Source: Macrostomum hystrix (taxonomy: Eukaryota > Animalia > Platyhelminthes). Taken from it: a stretch of 64,000 nt of DNA. Shown here piece after piece: positions 7,856-33,960 of this stretch. The notes under the pieces are model-generated. The model was not told the origin of the DNA. It did no database searches and saw nothing but the letters and a program-made list of their open reading frames with translations. The position numbers and the translations under genes were made by a program. Location of the stretch: positions 6,138,001 to 6,202,000 of the forward strand of contig CATNEN010000025.1 in assembly GCA_950097015.1 (NCBI GenBank), given 5' to 3'. The first letter of the stretch is position 1. Every line of letters begins with the position of its first letter.

Positions 7856-8393
7856 TCTTACTAAAAGTTTGATCTGATATCCTAAAACAGACTTGCAGAT
7901 TGTAAGCAGGAAACTGTATTTATAATAACCTTGTGTGACTTTTGGATCACATTAACTTCTTATTTTTCTAATTAAGATCTTTTTCTTCTATTATTGGCTA
8001 GAACTGAAACCCGTTGAACTGTGCAGCATGCAGTTTAAAATGCTTGCTGCAGTCATATTGTTTGTTGCAGAGACAGATAAATTAGTTCCGCTGCACCAAA
8101 CCTATAAAATCTGTTTGATTGCTTAGTTGAATTCATTTTGCATTCTAGTTTTGTAGCCAGTGCTAGATTTTGTAGCAACTTTTTTTGACGAAAATGCATA
8201 GTTAACAGTAGCTTGTATTCTTCCCTTCTGTTGTTCAGAAAAGTACATCTTTCATGTTTCCAATTATACATCAAAATTGATTATGTAATTCAAGAAGTCA
8301 TAAATCCAGTTTTTTTCTTTGGGTTCAGTAAAAAGTATTGGTTCTAATAATTACTGCAAAAATAAGTCCCCAAAAGTACTTTAAGCCAACCCA

Positions 8394-10134
8394 CAGATCC
8401 TCAAGTTCAGTACTCACCCATTCACTCAGATCCTCAAGCTCAGTACTCACCCATTCACTCAGATCCTCAAGTTCAGTACTCACCCATTCACTCAGATCCT
8501 CAAGTTCAGTACTCACCCATTCACTCAGATCCTCAAGTTCAGTACTCACCCATTCACTCAGATCCTCAAGTTCAGTACTCACCCATTCACTCAGATCCTC
8601 AAGTTCAGTACTCACCCATTCACTCAGATCCTCAAGTTCAGTACTCACCCATTCACTCAGATCCCCAGGTTCAGTACTCACCCATTCACTCAGATCCTCA
8701 AGCTCAGTACTCACCCATTCACTCAGATCCTCAAGTTCAGTACTCACCCATTCACTCAGATCCTCAAGTTCAGTACTCACCCATTCACTCAGATCCTCAA
8801 GTTCAGTACTCACCCATTCACTCAGATCCTCAAGTTCAGTACTCACCCATTCACTCAGATCCTCAAGCTCAGTACTCACCCATTCACTCAGATCCTCAGG
8901 TTCAGTACTCACCCATTCACTCAGATCCTCAGGTTCAGTACTCACCCATTCACTCAGAACCTCAGGTTCAGTACTCACCCATTCACTCAGATCCTCAAGT
9001 TCAGTACTCACCCATTCACTCAGATCCTCAAGTTCAGTACTCACCCATTCACTCAGATCCTCAGGTTCAGTACTCACCCATTCACTCAGATCCTCAAGTT
9101 CAGTACTCACCCATTCACTCAGATCCTCAGGTTCAGTACTCACCCATTCACTCAGATCCTCAAGTTCAGTACTCACCCATTCACTCAGATCCTCAGGTTC
9201 AGTACTCACCCATTCACTCAGATCCTCAGGTTCAGTACTCACCCATTCACTCAGATCCTCAGGTTCAGTACTCACCCATTCACTCAGATCCTCAGGTTCA
9301 GTACTCACCCATTCACTCAGATCCTCAGGTTCAGTACTCACCCATTCACTCAGATCCTCAGGTTCAGTACTCACCCATTCACTCAGATCCTCAAGTTCAG
9401 TACTCACCCATTCACTCAGATCCTCAAGTTCAGTACTCACCCATTCACTCAGATCCTCAAGTTCAGTACTCACCCATTCACTCAGATCCTCAGGTTCAGT
9501 ACTCACCCATTCACTCAGATCCTCAGGTTCAGTACTCACCCATTCACTCAGATCCTCAAGTTCAGTACTCACCCATTCACTCAGATCCTCAAGTTCAGTA
9601 CTCACCCATTCACTCAGATCCTCAGGTTCAGTACTCACCCATTCACTCAGATCCCCAGGTTCAGTACTCACCCATTCACTCAGAACCTCAGGTTCAGTAC
9701 TCACCCATTCACTCAGATCCTCAAGTTCAGTACTCACCCATTCACTCAGATCCTCAGGTTCAGTACTCACCCATTCACTCAGAACCTCAGGTTCAGTACT
9801 CACCCATTCACTCAGATCCTCAAGTTCAGTACTCACCCATTCACTCAGATCCTCAAGTTCAGTACTCACCCATTCACTCAGATCCTCAAGTTCAGTACTC
9901 ACCCATTCACTCAGATCCTCAGGTTCAGTACTCACCCATTCACTCAGATCCTCAAGTTCAGTACTCACCCATTCACTCAGATCCTCAGGTTCAGTACTCA
10001 CCCATTCACTCAGATCCTCAGGTTCAGTACTCACCCATTCACTCAGATCCTCAGGTTCAGTACTCACCCATTCACTCAGATCCTCAAGTTCAGTACTCAC
10101 CCATTCACTCAGATCCTCAGGTTCAGTACTCATC
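8394..10134. repeat. Minisatellite, 33-bp unit CAGATCCTCA(A/G)GTTCAGTACTCACCCATTCACT
   Basis: About 52 copies. The unit is 11 codons long, which explains the spurious 602- and 608-aa ORFs. Confidence 0.98.
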
Positions 10135-24285: not shown

Positions 24286-25355
24286 ATGGAACTGTATTCT
24301 TTAGTGAGCAGTCTTAGGAAGCCGGAATCATTGCGCAGTCAGAAATCGACGAAAATTCTGTCTAGCCGCGAAATTGGTTTCCAAGAAACCACTCGCCTAT
24401 CCGGTTTCCAAGAAACCACTCGCCCATCCGGTTTCCAAGAAACCACTCGCCCATCCGGTTTCCAAGAAACCACTCGCTCATCCGGTTTCCAAGAAACCAC
24501 TCGCTCATCCGGTTTCCAAGAAACCACTCGCTCATCCGGTTTCCAAGAAACCAATCGCTCATCCGGTGTCCAAGAAACCACTCGCTTATCCGGTTTTCCC
24601 AATGGCGACACTTCGGGGCTCGACGAAGCCAGTTTTTCAAAATCGAGGAACAGTATCCATCGATTGGCACCATTTCAAACTGGTGCTTTCCAAGAAAGCA
24701 GCAGAACTTTGGTCCGGATTCAGAGCATTGGTTCTCAGGATGCTCGAGCCGCAAGACGCCGCGTTGTGTTCGCTGGCACTGGCGCTCCCCGGGCGACGGC
24801 TGCAGTCGCCGCAACTTCAGCTTCGTCTGGACGCTTGGCAGAACTACGACCACGTCTGCTGGCGTCCAGCTACCTTCCCGAGTTCTACTCGAGGCGACCG
24901 CGAAGGCTGCCAGCGAAGAGAGGCGCCAATAGGCGACAAGGAGCTCATTGTAAGTAACGGCTGTGGATAGATCCCATATCCCAGATCCCATGTCCCAGAT
25001 CCCATGTCCCAGATCCCATGTCCCAGATCCCATGTCCCAGATCCCATGTCCCAGATCCCATGTCCCAGATCCCATGTCCCAGATCCCATGTCCCAGATCC
25101 CATGTCCCAGATCCCATGTCCCAGATCCCATGTCCCAGATCCCATGTCCCAGATCCCATGTCCCAGATCCCATGTCCCAGATCCCATGTCCCAGATCCCA
25201 TGTAAGAATCTAACCATTCTTTTGCAGACATCAGCCAGCACGAGAAGAAATTTCCAAGGGGAGCTTCATACAGCAGCAAGTCGATATCCTCAGCGGTGGC
25301 TGCAGGCGGTGGCAGTCGAGTTCATTCGCTGAGGGGCCGTCCAGCATCAATTTGA
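24286..25355 (+). CDS. Putative highly divergent Cip/Kip-like CDK inhibitor (paralogue A), 2 exons, ~263 aa, with an N-terminal 9-aa repeat
   Basis: Exons 24286-24949 and 25228-25355. The intron is phase 1 with a GTAAGT donor, CTAAC branch site at 25210-25214 and TTTTGCAG acceptor. Start context is aaaATGg. Contains ARRRVVF and LPEFYSRRPR (p27: LPEFYYRPPR). Family assignment rests on short motifs only. Confidence 0.5.
24376..24592 (+). repeat. 27-bp tandem repeat (GGTTTCCAAGAAACCACTCGCTCATCC) inside the predicted CDS, encoding SGFQETTR(S/P/L) x8
   Basis: Eight copies with the frame preserved; a related FQE motif recurs downstream (GAFQESSRT). Confidence 0.9.
24969..25203. repeat. Minisatellite, 14-bp unit CCCAGATCCCATGT filling the intron of gene 24286-25355
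   Basis: About 17 almost perfect copies. Confidence 0.97.
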
Positions 25356-25970: not shown

Positions 25971-26419
25971 TTCAAAGCAACTAATCCCAGCTCTCATTAT
26001 CCCAGACATTGGCAATAAAATTTCTTCTTTGAGTGGAGTTACTGTACTCTGGTCAGACAAATCACTGCAAATGTGAAAGGCTATGGTTGTGTCCGTTGAT
26101 TTCCGGTCATACCCTTGCCTTCTGTTTCAAATGACATGTAGTGGGCAAATTCTGCGAAACCCGAGACCAATCTGCCTGCTTTGATTTTTAATTAGTGCTA
26201 GTGTTGGCACATTGGTCAATTGTGACTGCTTCTTATCTGGAGCTGTGCTGTGTGTGAGTGAGGCCAAGTTGTTTGGGTTCTTGACTGCTTGTGATCAGGT
26301 TACGAGCTAAATTACATGCGTTATACCTATAATGCATGAGAAATCTTCCAGACCAATCGGCAAATCAGATATCAGAAAAAAAATCGGGAATCGAGAAATC
26401 TCCTATCTTCCCGATGGGA

Positions 26420-27000
26420 GAGAAATTTGGGAAACAGGGGAGAAATCGGGAAGATGGGAGAGAAATCGGGAAGATGGGGGGAGAAATCGGGGCGACGGGA
26501 AAGAAATTGAGGAGAGGGGGATAAATCGGGAAGATGGCGGATAAATCGGGAAGATGGTGGAGAAATCGGGGCGACGCGGGAGAAATCGGGAAGATAGAGG
26601 AGAAATCGGTAAGATGGGGGGAGAAATCGGGAAGATGGGGGGAGAAATCGGGGCGACCGGAAAGAAATTGAGGAGAAGGGGATAAATCGGGAAGATGGTG
26701 GAGAAATCGGGGCGACGCGGGAGAAATCGGGAAGAGGGGAAGAAATAGTGAATATGGGTAGAGAAATCGGGAAGATGGGGGAGAAATCGGGGCGACGGGA
26801 AAGAAATTGAGGAGAGGGGGAGAAATAGGGAAGATGGGGATAAATCGGGAAGATGGGGGATTAATCGGGAAGATGGTGGAGAAATCGGGAAGAGGGGAAG
26901 AAATAGTGAAGATGGGTGGAGAAATCGGGCGACGGGGGAGAAATTGGGAGAGGGGGAGAAATCGGGAAGATGGGGGAGAACTGGGGCGACAGGGAAGAAT
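26420..27000. repeat. Purine-rich minisatellite, ~20-bp unit GAGAAATCGGGAAGATGGGG with larger duplicated blocks
   Basis: About 27 degenerate copies. Confidence 0.9.
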
Positions 27001-28019: not shown

Positions 28020-28420
28020 TTGCCTCTCCTCTCGCTCCCCATCCTCTCCCTTGCTCTCTCTACACCCTCTCCCCCTCTTTTCTCTCTCTCTCCATCCTCT
28101 CCCTCTACTCTCTCTACATCCTCTCCCTCTACTCTCTCTCTCCCTCTACTCTCTCTCCATCCTCTCCCTCTACTCTCTCTCCATCCTCTCCCTCTTCTCT
28201 CTCCATCCTCTCCCTCTACTCTCTCTCCATCCTCTCCCTCTACTCTCTCTCCATCCTCTCCCTCTACTCTCTCTCCATCCTCTCCCTCTTCTCTCTCTCC
28301 ATCCTCTCCCTCTTCTCTCTCTACACCCTCTCCCCCTCCTCTCTTTCCATCTTCTCCCCTTCCTCTCTCTCCATCCTCTCCCTTCTACTCTCCCTAGTTC
28401 TCCCCTCCTCTTCGTCTTTC
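28020..28420. repeat. CT-rich minisatellite (CTCTCCATCCTCTCCCTCTACTCT-like, ~24 bp)
   Basis: Polypyrimidine array. Confidence 0.9.
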
Positions 28421-29149
28421 TCATTTTCCTGTCTTGCTCTCCATAGCATTTTGGCAGCTGTCGGGGATAGATCGTAGGAGGCGCCTGTCTCTATTTCATG
28501 TTCCAACACAGCTGTCATACATATAACCCATTAGCTGATCAGTCCTCACTTTATAACGTGGATTTTATTTATGCTAATATTTAGATAGTGAACAGTCAGA
28601 GGCCAGTTGAGGGACTATAGGCAACAGTTTCCATAGTAATCACTTCCTTTTGTATGCTCGATTGTTCGTTAAAGACTAGACTTAATTGGATGCCTGAAAA
28701 TTGTCTTAGTAACTAATAAAGGCTAGTTGTTTTCCGCGCCTACTAATAGTTGCTAAGCCGGGGTTGTAAATCCTGCTGGCGGGGGCCCCACTCCACTAAG
28801 CCCAACCCACCCCAACCACCTAGCCAACCAACCAACCCACAAACTTATCACTATGGGGACAGAGAAACACCGCTTTTAATGACTCACTCACCCATTTATG
28901 CGACTGATCAAAAGTTCTATTACTAATGTTTTTCGTATAATAAAATTATTTTCTAAATCACAAATATCAACCTTATCTTCCTTCCGTTCCACTTTTAATT
29001 ATAGATTTAAGGCAGTGTTTGCCATGAATCCAAAAGCTGACTAAATTTGTTACATGGCTAGAGCCGAAGATTGGCTTGCAGGAGAGGAGAGGTAGACATG
29101 TAGGGAGACGAGAAGTAGACACGGGAAGAGAAGTAGATAGGCGACGGGT

Positions 29150-29812
29150 GGTTGATAGGCGAGGAGAGGTAGACAGAAAAGGAGAGGTAGACAGAAAAGG
29201 AGAGGTAGACAGAAGAGGAGAGGTAGACAGAAGAGGAGAGGTAGACAGAAGAGGAGAGGTAGACAGAAGAGGAGAGGTAGACAGAAGAGGAGAGGTAGAC
29301 AGAAGAGGAGAGGTAGACAGAAGAGGAGAGGTAGACAGAAGAGGAGAGGTAGACAGAAGAGGAGAGGTAGACAGAAGAGGAGAGGTAGACAGAAGAGGAG
29401 AGGTAGACAGAAGAGGAGATGTAGACAGAAGAGGAGAGGTAGACAGAAGAGGAGAGGTAGACAGAAGAGGAGAGGTAGACAGAAGAGGAGAGGTAGACAG
29501 AAGAGGAGATGTAGACAGAAGAGGAGAGGTAGACAGAAGAGGAGAGGTAGACAGAAGAGGAGAGGTAGACAGAAGAGGAGAGGTAGACAGAAAAGGAGAG
29601 GTAGACAGAAGAGGAGAGGTAGACAGAAGAGGAGAGGTAGACAGAAGAGGAGAGGTAGACAGAAAAGGAGAGGTAGACAGAAGAGGAGAGGTAGACAGAA
29701 GAGGAGAGGTAGACAGAAGAGGAGAGGTAGACAGAAGAGGAGAGGTAGACAGAAAAGGAGAGGTAGACAGAAAAGGAGAGGTAGACAGAAGAGGAGAGGT
29801 AGACAGAAGGAG
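29150..29812. repeat. Minisatellite, 18-bp unit GAGAGGTAGACAGAA(G/A)AG
   Basis: About 36 copies; produces the spurious EVDRRG ORF. Confidence 0.97.
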
Positions 29813-30477
29813 AGGTAAGAGTAAGATAGAACAGAAGTGTAGCCCCTCGGATGTCGGTGCGATACTAATATTTATTCGGTGTGCAAAACTGAAATTCTGT
29901 ACATAAATTTTAATTATAGCCTACACAGTGATAATAGTTTCAGACAATAAAGTAGTCAAAACGGGCACCAAATTATAACGTTCAAATCTGACTTCAACAC
30001 ACTAGCGGGCTTCAATTTTCAGCCAACCGCGCAACCACCCCACCACCCCAATCTGTTCGTCCTTGCAAACCCTAGACTATAAACGCGGGCCGGCCGGCCG
30101 GCATGTCATAAAATTGTGGGGGTGCTGCGCTTAGTCATGCTCATGCCCTGGCAGGCCTGGGGGACCTTCATGCGTGTTTTTCACGCTAGCACCCAAGTTC
30201 AGCAGGGTGAAGAGGGGTAAAGAACGGAGGATGGGGTGGGGCTGAATCAGCCAATAGAAAGCGATCTGACCAAACCCCCTCGAGTGCCCACATATTTTGT
30301 GGCCCAGCCAACCCCACCCCCAGGGCTATATCACGTGAGGCTTTGCCGGCTGCTCCATATTTTCCAGTTATTTCTCTCAGCAGCCCAGCCGAGCTTTGTC
30401 TTTAGAAGAAACGCCCCGCCGGCTATTATTTTTTTCCATATTGCTCCGGACTTTAAAAAAGCAAGTTTTGTTCAGCA

Positions 30478-31087
30478 ATGCCATTCAGTGCTAGCGCAGC
30501 TCCCAACGGCAGCCGCAGTGGAAGCGGAGGTGCAGTTCGGGGAATTCGCTTCGTCAATAGCAACACTGGCAGCGGAAAAGTTGGATCATTGCAACAGCAA
30601 CATCAGACAGAGAAGCAGCATCAGCAACAGTTGACATTCAATAGCGACATTCTGAGCTCCCGCCTCGACCGTCTGGGCCTGACCGTAGAAGACGCAGCTG
30701 CCATTGCCAAGGCCTACCGGCTGACAGCCGTGCCAGCATCGCGACTGCCCAGCTTCTATAGCAGGCGTCACTGCAGCTGCAAGTCTGCAAAATGCACCGA
30801 AGATGACAGCAGCAGCAGCAGCAGCAAGGCCGGCCTCAGTTCCGTTGGCGCTGGAGTCGTCAAGAGGCGTCCCTTGGTGCAGGCCAGAATTTGTGGTGAG
30901 TTGCTTGAACTTTTATCTGCTATGTTTTCTGTTAGTTTATTATCTATATAAATTTTTTGAAGGTGCTTCATTTTCCCCATCATTCTCTTTTTTTCCAGAC
31001 ATGTTCCCAAGCAAGAAGCGAATCAGACTGCAAGCCTTACCTCAGCAGCAGTTCGCTTCTTTGGCCAAGAAGAAGTCAACTAACTAG
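30478..31087 (+). CDS. Putative divergent Cip/Kip-family CDK inhibitor (paralogue B, p21/p27/p57-like), 2 exons, 168 aa
   Basis: Exons 30478-30895 and 30999-31087 (phase 1, G|GTGAG...TTTTCCAG|AC). YRLTAVPASRLPSFYSR aligns without gaps to p27 YEWQEVEKGSLPEFYYR. The C-terminal KRRPLVQARICDMFPSKKRI resembles the p21 PIP degron KRRQTSMTDFYHSKRRL, with the intron inside the Asp codon. Confidence 0.62.
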
Positions 31088-32067
31088 GATTTTTAGGCCT
31101 GGTTCGAAGTGAAAAATAAGGCAAGGTGTGACTGTTCCGCATGACTCATCGGCCCACTCCAAAGTCTGTTTCTTCCGCTGGGTCTTCATCCCCGCCAGCA
31201 ACCCCACTCCTTTGTTTGGTCGCCCCGAGGGGCCGCCCAAGCGCATGCAGCGGTTGAGGCTTTGAGGGTGACGTCATCGCGCACGTGTCCCAGGCCCCAT
31301 CTTGTGCCATAAACAAAGTGGAAAAGTCTTAGACTTAAAGGGTTCGGGGGAAATGGGAATACGAGTCATCGCGTGTTTGCCATGAGTAAAGGTGGCCTCG
31401 TTATATTCTATGCCAGCTATAGCATTGCTTGAATGATTAATTGGTGAGGGTGTGAATTTCATTATTCTAGTTTTCTTTAAGTCTTCTGTTTATAAATTGT
31501 CAGGCTTTTTCTCTGTTCATCTGTGATTGATTGTTTTGTCTGATTGTTTCAATAATCCTACTGTACAATAGGTTATTGTAATATTTGTATTATCCGTCAC
31601 AAAATTGCTACTGTTAATTTGCCATTAGTTCTCGATATAAACAGCATTGCATTGTGTGTAGAATATCAAATATATGGAAAGCATTGTTTCCTAATTCATA
31701 AACTGTACATTGTATTTTTATTGCTATAGTACTTTATATTTGTGAATTGTGTTTTGAAATTTATTGCAATTTTTTTTCTTTTTCAAAAGGAGGACAGATG
31801 AACTTCTAACGGACCCTGCACAATATAGCAGAAAAACTGTTGTTGCTTTTAGATCTGGACTTGTAGCATGTGTAAACACAGTCTTACAAATGCAGTCTGA
31901 ACTTAATTTGAATACCATTTACCAATTTAGTGTCTGTGAGTCATGTGGCCTGGCCTGTAACCAGTAAGGAATTTTGCAATTCAAATCATAGGCTATAGTG
32001 TTGTGACATTATAATGTTATCATGATTAGGGTCAAAATGATATTATCTTCTCCGAAATCCCTATTCT

Positions 32068-33960
32068 AGAATTCCCGACTCTCTCCGAATTCCTGACTCT
32101 CTCCGAATTCCTGACTCTCCGAATTCCTGACTCTCTCCGAATTCCTGACTCTCCGAAATCCTGACTCTCTCCGAATTCCTGACTCTCTCCGAAATCCTGA
32201 CTCTCTCCGAATTCCTGACTCTCTCCGAAATCCTGACTCTCTCCGAATTCCTGACTCTCTCCGAATTCCTGACTCTCTCCGAATTCCTGACTCTCTCCGA
32301 ATTCCTGACTCTCTCCGAATTCCTGACTCTCTCCGAATTCCTGACTCTCTCCGAATTCCTGACTCTCCGAATTCCTGACTCTCTCCGAATTCCTGACTCT
32401 CTCCGAATTCCTGACTCTCTCCGAATTCCTGACTCTCTCCGAATTCCTGACTCTCCAAATTCCTGATTCTCCAAATTCCTGACTGTCTCCGAATTCCTGA
32501 CTCTCCGAAATACTGATTCTCTCCGAGTTCCTGAATCTGCGAATTCCTGACTCTCTCCGAACTCCTGCCTCTCTGAATTCCTGACTCTCTCCGAATTCCT
32601 GACTCTCTCCGAATTCCTGACTCTCTCCGAATTCCTGACTCTCCAAATTCCTGATTCTCCAAATTCCTGACTGTCTCCGAATTCCTGACTCTCCGAAATA
32701 CTGATTCTCTCCGAGTTCCTGAATCTGCGAATTCCTGACTCTCTCCGAACTCCTGCCTCTCTGAATTCCTGACTCTCTCCGAATTCCTGACTCTCTCCGA
32801 ATTCCTGCCTCTCTCTCTCTCCGAATTTCTGACTCTCTCCGAATTTCTAACTCTCCGAAGTCCTGACTCTCTCCGAATTCCTGACTCTCTCCGAATTCCT
32901 GACTCTCTCCGAATTCCTGACTCTCTCTCAGAATTTCTGACTCTCCGAAGTCCTGACTCTCTCCGAAGTCCTGACTCTCTCCGAATTCCTGACTCTCTCC
33001 GAATTCCTGACTCTCTCCGAATTCCTAACTCTCTCCAAATTCCTGACTCTCTCCAAATTCCTGATTCTCCAAATTCCTGACTCTCCGAATTCCTGATTCT
33101 CTCTCCGAATTCCTAACTCTCTCCGAATTCCTAACTCTCTCCAAATTCCTGATTCTCCAAATTCCTGACTGTCTCCGAATTCCTGACTCTCCGAAATACT
33201 GATTCTCTCCGAGTTCCTGAATCTGCGAATTCCTGACTCTCTCCGAACTCCTGCCTCTCTGAATTCCTGACTCTCTCCGAATTCCTGCCTCTCCGAATTC
33301 CTGACTCTCTCCGACTTCCTGACTCTCTCCGAATTCCAGACTCTCTCCGAATTTCTGACTCTCTCCGAATTCCTTACTCTCTCCGAAATCCTGATTTTCC
33401 GAATTCCTGACTCTCCGAATTCCTGATTCTCTCTCCGAATTCCTAACTCTCTCCGAATTCCTAACTCCCTCCGAATTTCTGACTCTCTCCGAATTCCTGA
33501 CTCTCTCCGAATTCCTGCCTCTCTCTCTCCGAATTCCTGACTCTCTCCGAATTCCTGACTCTCTCCGAATTCCTGCCTCTCTCTCTCTCCGAATTTCTGA
33601 CTCTCTCCAATTTCTGACTCTCTCCGAATTTCTAACTCTCCGAAGTCCTGACTCTCTCCGAATTCCTGACTCTCTCCGAATTCCTGACTCTCTCCGAATT
33701 CCTGACTCTCTCTCAGAATTTCTGACTCTCCGAAGTCCTGACTCTCTCCGAAGTCCTGACTCTCTGAGTTCCTGACTCTCTCCGAATTCCTGACTCTCTC
33801 CGAATTTCTGACTCTCTCCGAATTCCTTACTCTCTCCGAAATCCTGATTTTCCGAATTCCTGACTCTCCGAATTCCTGACTCTCTCCGAATTCCTGACTC
33901 TCTCCGAATTCCTGACTCTGCGAATTCCTGACTCTCAGGATTTCTGACTCTCTCCCAATT
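32068..33960. repeat. Minisatellite, 16/18-bp unit CCGAATTCCTGACTCT(CT) with higher-order blocks
   Basis: About 105 copies, most with an EcoRI site; source of the ESQEFG/RRESGI spurious ORFs. Confidence 0.97.

Follow-up and report, generated by a model that had tools for sequence, protein, structure and literature searches.

A candidate p21-like, PCNA-coupled CDK inhibitor gene in the macrostomid flatworm Macrostomum hystrix

The CDK inhibitors p21 (CDKN1A), Xenopus Xic1, Drosophila Dacapo and C. elegans CKI-1 are small disordered proteins, and so is the predicted product of gene B, which we analysed in a 64,000-nt stretch of DNA from the flatworm Macrostomum hystrix (the window). In inhibitors of the p21 type, a docking motif (R-x-hydrophobic) is followed by a linker, an LP..Y motif, a Ser-rich disordered stretch and a C-terminal PIP degron, and the candidate modules of gene B stand in the same order. 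The degron-like motif of gene B also resembles the p21 type in its Asp at position 6, its basic residues at +3 and +4 and the basic clusters on both sides. Where p21 has an R-x-L motif directly after the degron (KRRLIF), the gene B counterpart is KKRIRL. In the human p21 gene, too, a large coding exon probably precedes a phase-1 intron, with a short exon closing the coding region; the intron would lie in the Asp codon of the degron (..ACA G|AT TTC, the coding part of exon 2 being 445 nt), a position that the initial annotation gives for both CDKN1A and CDKN1C, and the coding intron of p27 is probably also of phase 1. Gene B differs from the p21 type, however, in having no detectable CDI and no WNFDF, as well as Cys at position 5 and Met at position 7 of the PIP-like motif.

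The second point of comparison is the kinase-inhibitory domain of p27 (CDKN1B), which has the pattern Y....V....LP.FY.R in common with gene B, Tyr94 of gene B aligning with Tyr88 of p27. A helix predicted upstream of the LPxFY segment of gene B, in a low-confidence model, recalls the linker helix of p27. In contrast, the hairpin between this helix and LPxFY is missing from gene B, the Trp of YEW is replaced by Leu, and p27 for its part has no PIP degron. The WNFDF hairpin is a main CDK contact of p27 and binds the N-lobe of the kinase.

In free-living flatworms, inhibitors of this kind have been reported as absent. The genes lost in planarians include p27, with no CKI found in Dugesia (10.1101/2021.06.13.448266); none of the CDK inhibitors was retrieved in Schmidtea (10.64898/2026.09.16.750956); Cdkn1 was not found in Rhabditophora (PMC11555623); and cki was detected by BLAST in 0 of 19 data sets of free-living flatworms, a result from which horizontal transfer was proposed for the cki of the parasites (PMC11160599). 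With the latter, namely Schistosoma mansoni cki (Smp_199050) and the cestode CDI proteins (PMC11160599), gene B was compared by description only. Smp_199050 is without an annotated CDI domain, yet it behaves in RNAi as a proliferation brake and functional tumour suppressor (Wendt & Collins 2024, PMC11160599), which indicates that flatworm CKIs can lie under the thresholds of domain detection. It keeps BLAST-level similarity to Dacapo and CDKN1B (PMC11160599), whereas gene B has none. Since the reported absences rest on BLAST and orthology searches, a protein that shares motifs only, like that of gene B, would escape them.

Gene B lies on the + strand and consists of two coding exons, which yield a product of 168 aa. 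Exon 1 (30478..30895, +) starts with the ATG at 30478, upstream of which there is an in-frame TAA at 30454-30456, and provides 139 full codons together with the initial base of the Asp140 codon; its 3' end reads ..CAG GCC AGA ATT TGT G and is followed by GTGAGT at 30896. The intron (30896..30998, +) is 103 nt long, has GT..AG ends and is of phase 1, interrupting the codon for the Asp in the PIP-degron-like motif; at its 3' end, a pyrimidine tract precedes the AG, which reaches up to 30998 (..CCAG|AC ATG TTC). Exon 2 (30999..31087, +; AC ATG TTC CCA AGC AAG AAG CGA ..) supplies the rest of Asp140 and 28 further residues, that is, MFPSKKRIRLQA and a variable tail, ending with TAG at 31085-31087. 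MFPSKKRIRLQA contains PIP positions 7-8, the basic residues at +3 and +4 and the KKRIR cluster. Over the splice joint, with the Asp140 codon split as G|AC, the protein reads QARIC-D-MFPSKKRIRL. The initial annotation, which had placed a phase-1 intron in this Asp codon, described the sequence of gene B correctly at every position.

The transcript evidence consisted of assembled contigs, not raw reads, from two runs of a 2020 study (X5 and X6) and two of a 2024 study (X1 and X2). In X5 and X6, single contigs of 1085 and 1180 nt lay on 30362/30373-30894 and 30998-31549/31655 and omitted 103 nt with GT..AG ends. The junction at 30895/30999, for which the initial annotation had named different splicing as a refutation, was thus the one matched by the contigs. 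X1 and X2 contained pieces of the gene B exons, one of which stopped at 30893, and the intron was covered by contigs in 0 of the 4 runs. The run type is unrecorded, and the contigs were read as RNA-derived, since the omission of a GT..AG intron is what RNA gives. The 5' UTR (30362..30477, +) lies within the transcript contigs, and the 3' UTR (31088..31700, +) extends to contig ends at 31549-31700. In this macrostomid flatworm, gene B is a true gene and is expressed.

A word search with exon 1 retrieved two proteins, both from Macrostomum lignano and with 37-39% local identity: P0001, of 188 aa, and P0002, of 190 aa (BOX15_Mlig002845g1), the latter locus, Mlig002845, having no mention that we could find in the literature. 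The two exons were searched separately, and P0001 stood in as the full-length representative. When an HMM of P0001, P0002 and the two window exons was run against 1.84 billion representative proteins, P0001 was the only match. The gene B family is known only from two species of Macrostomum (Rhabditophora, Macrostomorpha). The M. lignano gene (8001-9161 of sequence L001) has one intron, at the same position and in the same phase as in the window (..ATT TGC G|GTAAGT ... TTTCAG|AT ATG TTT), although it is 588 nt long and filled with a 21-nt tandem repeat.

Between the window and M. lignano, synonymous sites were saturated (pS about 0.67), and the 90 aligned codons outside three conserved blocks gave a pN of 0.54, near free drift. 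Within the blocks, pN was 0.05 (block 1), 0.13 (block 2) and 0.13 (block 3). Such confinement of constraint to blocks is a typical signature of a disordered protein that acts via short linear motifs, as the product of gene B may do. The structure predictions were in agreement with disorder: the ESM Atlas model of P0001 had a pLDDT of 0.44, and the AF2 model of the ortholog (pLDDT 46.7) contained helices at 48-84 and 87-100 as its sole structure, falling, in this low-confidence model, between RGIRF and LPGFY. AF2 put the equivalent of YRLTAV in a helix rather than a strand, also with low confidence, which counts against a CKI reading. In the ESM Atlas, the family had no feature match, and the structural rows, with TM <0.4 on a disordered model, are meaningless.

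Block 1, GAVRGIRF (G18-F25; 30529..30552, +), was invariant in the ortholog, with a pN of 0.05 versus a pS of 0.61. Its R-G-I-R-F resembles a cyclin-docking motif of the RxLxF type, a variant of the canonical R-x-L-F-G, and is a candidate for that role. R21-G-I-R-F25 is invariant and strongly constrained; the pattern itself appeared in ~15% of shuffled proteins and carries little information.

Block 2, YRLTAVPASRLPSFYSRRHCSCKSA (Y80-A104; 30715..30789, +), had 23 of its 25 residues identical in the ortholog. It forms the end of a 34-residue stretch, EDAAAIAKAYRLTAVPASRLPSFYSRRHCSCKSA (E71-A104), with a pN of 0.13, and its conserved pattern, RLTAVPASRLP.FYSRRHCSCKSA, includes the p27-like LPxFY, which in the window is LPSFY (30745-30759; L90-P-S-F-Y94-S-R) and in the ortholog LPGFY. 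For residues 80-96 (YRLTAVPASRLPSFYSR), an ungapped match to the p27 string with 7 identities in 17 had been reported; recomputation gave the same figure, and 3 of 20,000 shuffles reached the score (P = 1.5e-4). The absence of WNFDF, which had also been reported, was borne out: neither W-N-F-D-F nor anything similar was present in the window protein, whose sequence is devoid of Trp, and the motif was absent from P0001 and P0002 as well. The conservation of all 25 residues of the block, HCSCKSA included, exceeds what a CDK-site insert needs, which hints that block 2 binds another or an additional partner.

Block 3 (RPLVQARIC / MFPSKKRIRLQA; pN 0.13) includes the basic cluster KRR (residues 129-131), PLVQARIC and the first Asp base (30862..30895, +) and continues in exon 2. 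In both species, the block reads KR[RK]..PLVQ..ICDMFP.KKR.RL, a PIP-degron-like pattern with basic residues on either side. When Q135-A-R-I138-C-D-M141-F142, which is invariant in the ortholog, was compared with the PIP box Q-x-x-[ILMV]-x-x-[FY]-[FY], the Gln, the Ile and the Phe at position 8 fitted, and position 7 was Met. A PIP degron is defined by a PIP box in which positions 5-6 are TD and +4 is basic, and in human cells +3 matters as well (PMC8871960). Positions 5-6 of gene B are Cys-Asp in both species, so that the Asp is kept and the Thr replaced, and K145 and K146 occupy +3 and +4, as does the KK of the ortholog. For p21, high-affinity PCNA binding has been attributed to positively charged flanks (PMC12366268), and the gene B motif has KRR on its upstream side and KKRIR on its downstream side. 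Of the p21-like degron recognized in the initial annotation, the pattern Q-x-x-hydrophobic-x-D-x-F with a basic +4 is present, but no more than 4 of 12 residues agree with the p21 string, a match of pattern and not of sequence.

The frequencies at which these motifs would be expected by chance were estimated from 20,000 shuffles of the gene B protein composition, the split Asp being counted in the composition and the two exon products being kept apart by an X for matching. Seven identities with the 17-residue p27 string were expected at 1.5e-4 per protein, LP.FY at 2.2e-4, a PIP-degron pattern relaxed to admit any residue at position 5 and Met at position 7 at 3e-5 and R.[LIV].F at 0.15. LPxFY alone is not significant proteome-wide, a few being expected per proteome, whereas the combination of LP.FY with the PIP degron is significant, its expectation being ~7e-9 for one protein and roughly 2e-4 for a proteome of 30,000 proteins. 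The joint value is optimistic, since the patterns were set after the sequence had been seen. Even so, chance does not readily explain why the motifs coincide with the constrained blocks.

The reading that we favor, and whose truth we judge to be evenly poised, is that gene B encodes a CDK inhibitor that is p21-like but divergent and is destroyed via PCNA. Both the binding partners and the inhibitory activity are, throughout, what we infer from the motifs. The N-terminal R-x-I-x-F would dock on the cyclin, a helical linker would lead from there to LPSFY, and Tyr94 of this motif would fill the ATP pocket of the CDK, as Tyr88 of p27 does. The C-terminal module Q135-A-R-I-C-D-M-F142 would bind DNA-loaded PCNA, upon which the protein would pass to CRL4-Cdt2 and be destroyed in S phase; with KRR and KKRIR, the same module would double as a bipartite nuclear localization signal. 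A protein of this kind would keep cells in G1/G0 and be cleared once replication starts.

An alternative that we consider unlikely, though it deserves to be taken seriously, is that gene B encodes an unstable protein that binds PCNA and is coupled to replication without inhibiting CDKs, either a lineage-specific CRL4-Cdt2 substrate or a PCNA client, in which RLTAVPASRLP.FYSRRHCSCKSA of block 2 would bind some other partner. Proteins with such roles, like PCLAF/PAF15 and fission-yeast Spd1, resemble gene B in being small and disordered and in carrying a PIP-type motif, on which their own function rests, and the C-terminal module of gene B is its best-matching and most specific motif. The conservation of block 2 far past LPxFY, the absence of WNFDF and the lack of a match to the CDI profile are all in accordance with this alternative. 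To our knowledge, however, PCLAF/PAF15 and Spd1 lack both LPxFY and the C-terminal, basic-flanked arrangement of the p21 type, and the only proteins in which we know LPxFY to stand just before a basic-flanked PIP degron at the C terminus are inhibitors of the p21/Xic1/Dacapo/CKI-1 type. The joint chance of LPxFY and the degron (~7e-9) likewise speaks against a mere PCNA client, and the conserved N-terminal R-x-I-x-F and the linker helix suit the layout of a CKI.

It is improbable, in our view, that gene B is a Macrostomum-specific disordered protein of unrelated function whose resemblance to CKIs and PIP degrons is coincidental, although the database searches give this explanation some ground. 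Neither CDI (PF02234) nor any other Pfam family matched at E<=10 when exon 1, exon 2, P0001, P0002 and four fragments were searched, and sequence, profile, fragment and phmmer searches of the PDB returned nothing at E<=10, even though the solved structures should include chains of p27 and p21. No profile link to Cip/Kip emerged from Pfam, from the PDB or from the HMM search of the 1.84 billion representatives, which returned only P0001; no relative outside Macrostomum and no family, PDB or Atlas match was found in these searches. The motifs were, moreover, recognized in hindsight, in the course of a scan over many windows, and both are noncanonical (Cys at 5, Met at 7, no WNFDF). Against coincidence, the three constrained blocks are precisely where the matches fall, their order is the canonical one, and the joint expectation of LPxFY and the degron, per protein as per proteome, is that given above.

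Of the CKI-like reading put forward in the initial annotation, the gene model, the splice, the intron phase and the constraint on both motifs have held, but no profile method reaches Cip/Kip. With the motifs present and a profile link missing, "CKI-like" is a reasonable functional hypothesis and not a demonstrated family membership; gene B would "work like" a CKI rather than "be" a member of the CDI family. It may descend from the Cip/Kip ancestor with loss of the WNFDF hairpin, or it may have assembled the motifs independently. Somewhat more tentatively than the reading of gene B itself, we suggest that free-living flatworms may keep Cip/Kip descendants that lack WNFDF, lie below the reach of BLAST and HMM searches and retain the three motifs and the ancestral phase-1 intron.

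In animals reported to be without such brakes, gene B makes a credible candidate inhibitor of CDKs, p21-like and coupled to PCNA, a proposal that could fall either way. If gene B is a CKI, it bears directly on the reported lack of Cip/Kip/INK4 inhibitors in free-living flatworms. Should Cip/Kip descendants persist there, both the reported absence of cki from the 19 data sets of free-living flatworms and the horizontal-transfer origin proposed for the parasite cki would be a detection artefact, and in flatworm stem-cell biology Cdh1 would be joined by a second exit brake. Since Macrostomum lignano has been described as open to transgenesis (PMC5173321), its ortholog Mlig002845 offers a cheap and concrete test for a p21-like brake in the cell-cycle exit of neoblasts of free-living flatworms.

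Upstream of the coding region, several elements were kept between 30248-30372 of the window and 7750-7860 of L001 despite the saturation of synonymous sites. A CCAAT box in the promoter (CAGCCAATA; 30248..30257, +) did not differ between the window and the region upstream of the M. lignano gene, and a 20-nt element, CTCCATATTTTCCAGTTATT (30353..30372, +), was identical in both. This element marks the transcript 5' end, the RNA contigs starting at 30362 and 30373, and it ends in the acceptor-like TTTTCCAG; it could be a spliced-leader (trans-splice) acceptor or an initiator or start region. TATATCACG[TC]GA was also conserved upstream of gene B in both species, forming a CACGTG E-box in the window only. 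The 5' UTRs had the strings AACGCCCC.C.GGCTA, CCATATTG and ACTTTAAA..AAAGCAAG in common. Among p53 response elements, E2F, CHR and CCAAT, only the last was conserved in both promoters, and Rfam gave no match over 29800-32000. That gene B could be a chance ORF with a chance GT..AG pair, as its low-complexity composition and the minisatellites that fill the locus might suggest, is scarcely conceivable and is refuted by the spliced contigs in two runs, the coverage of exon but not intron in two further runs of a second study, the exon structure and intron kept in the ortholog, the strong purifying selection on the blocks and the conserved promoter elements.

A neighbor of gene B, gene A (24286-25355), also contains an LPxFY motif. 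SSYLPEFYSRR of gene A and ASRLPSFYSRR of gene B were identical at 8 of 11 positions (E = 0.009 for a single comparison), the two genes having S.LP.FYSRR in common, and gene A has R-R-V-V-F ~35 residues upstream. This likeness weakly suggests a paralogous pair. On reading, no PIP degron was found in the second exon of gene A; no homolog of gene A, its C-terminal region included, was found at E<=10; and Pfam gave no CDI and only DUF6636, at a meaningless E of 0.049. Within 8 kb upstream of the M. lignano ortholog of gene B, there was no gene-A-like LPxFY. The GFQETTR.S repeats at the N terminus of gene A (24376-24596) are encoded by 8.2 copies of a 27-nt minisatellite (96% matches), a recent expansion that makes the gene A model doubtful in this part. 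Gene A was accordingly discarded as a bridge to the canonical CKIs, having only the 8 of 11 identities with gene B, no homolog and young repeats.

In the 3' UTR of gene B, GTGACGTCATCGCGCACGTG (31268-31290) contains a perfect CRE palindrome (TGACGTCA) with a CACGTG E-box close behind. Such a combination is unusual within a UTR and could serve the promoter of something downstream or on the opposite strand.

Tandem repeats were a general feature of the region. The intron of gene A holds 16.8 copies of a 14-nt repeat, AGATCCCATGTCCC (24969-25203), and the intron of the M. lignano ortholog 20.5 copies of its 21-nt repeat, CTCTCAGATCCCCAATTCCCC (L001 8606-9027). Both repeat units contain CAGATCCC, which may be due to chance or reflect a related minisatellite family. 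Around gene B, dense minisatellites were found at 26413-26980, 28023-28392, 29161-29817 and 32069-33000, with units of 20/59 nt, 24/72 nt, 18 nt (36.6 copies) and 18 nt (53 copies). The 18-nt repeat with 36.6 copies corresponds to the EVDRRG repeats of a 276-aa "ORF" at 29076-29906, which is most likely just repeat.
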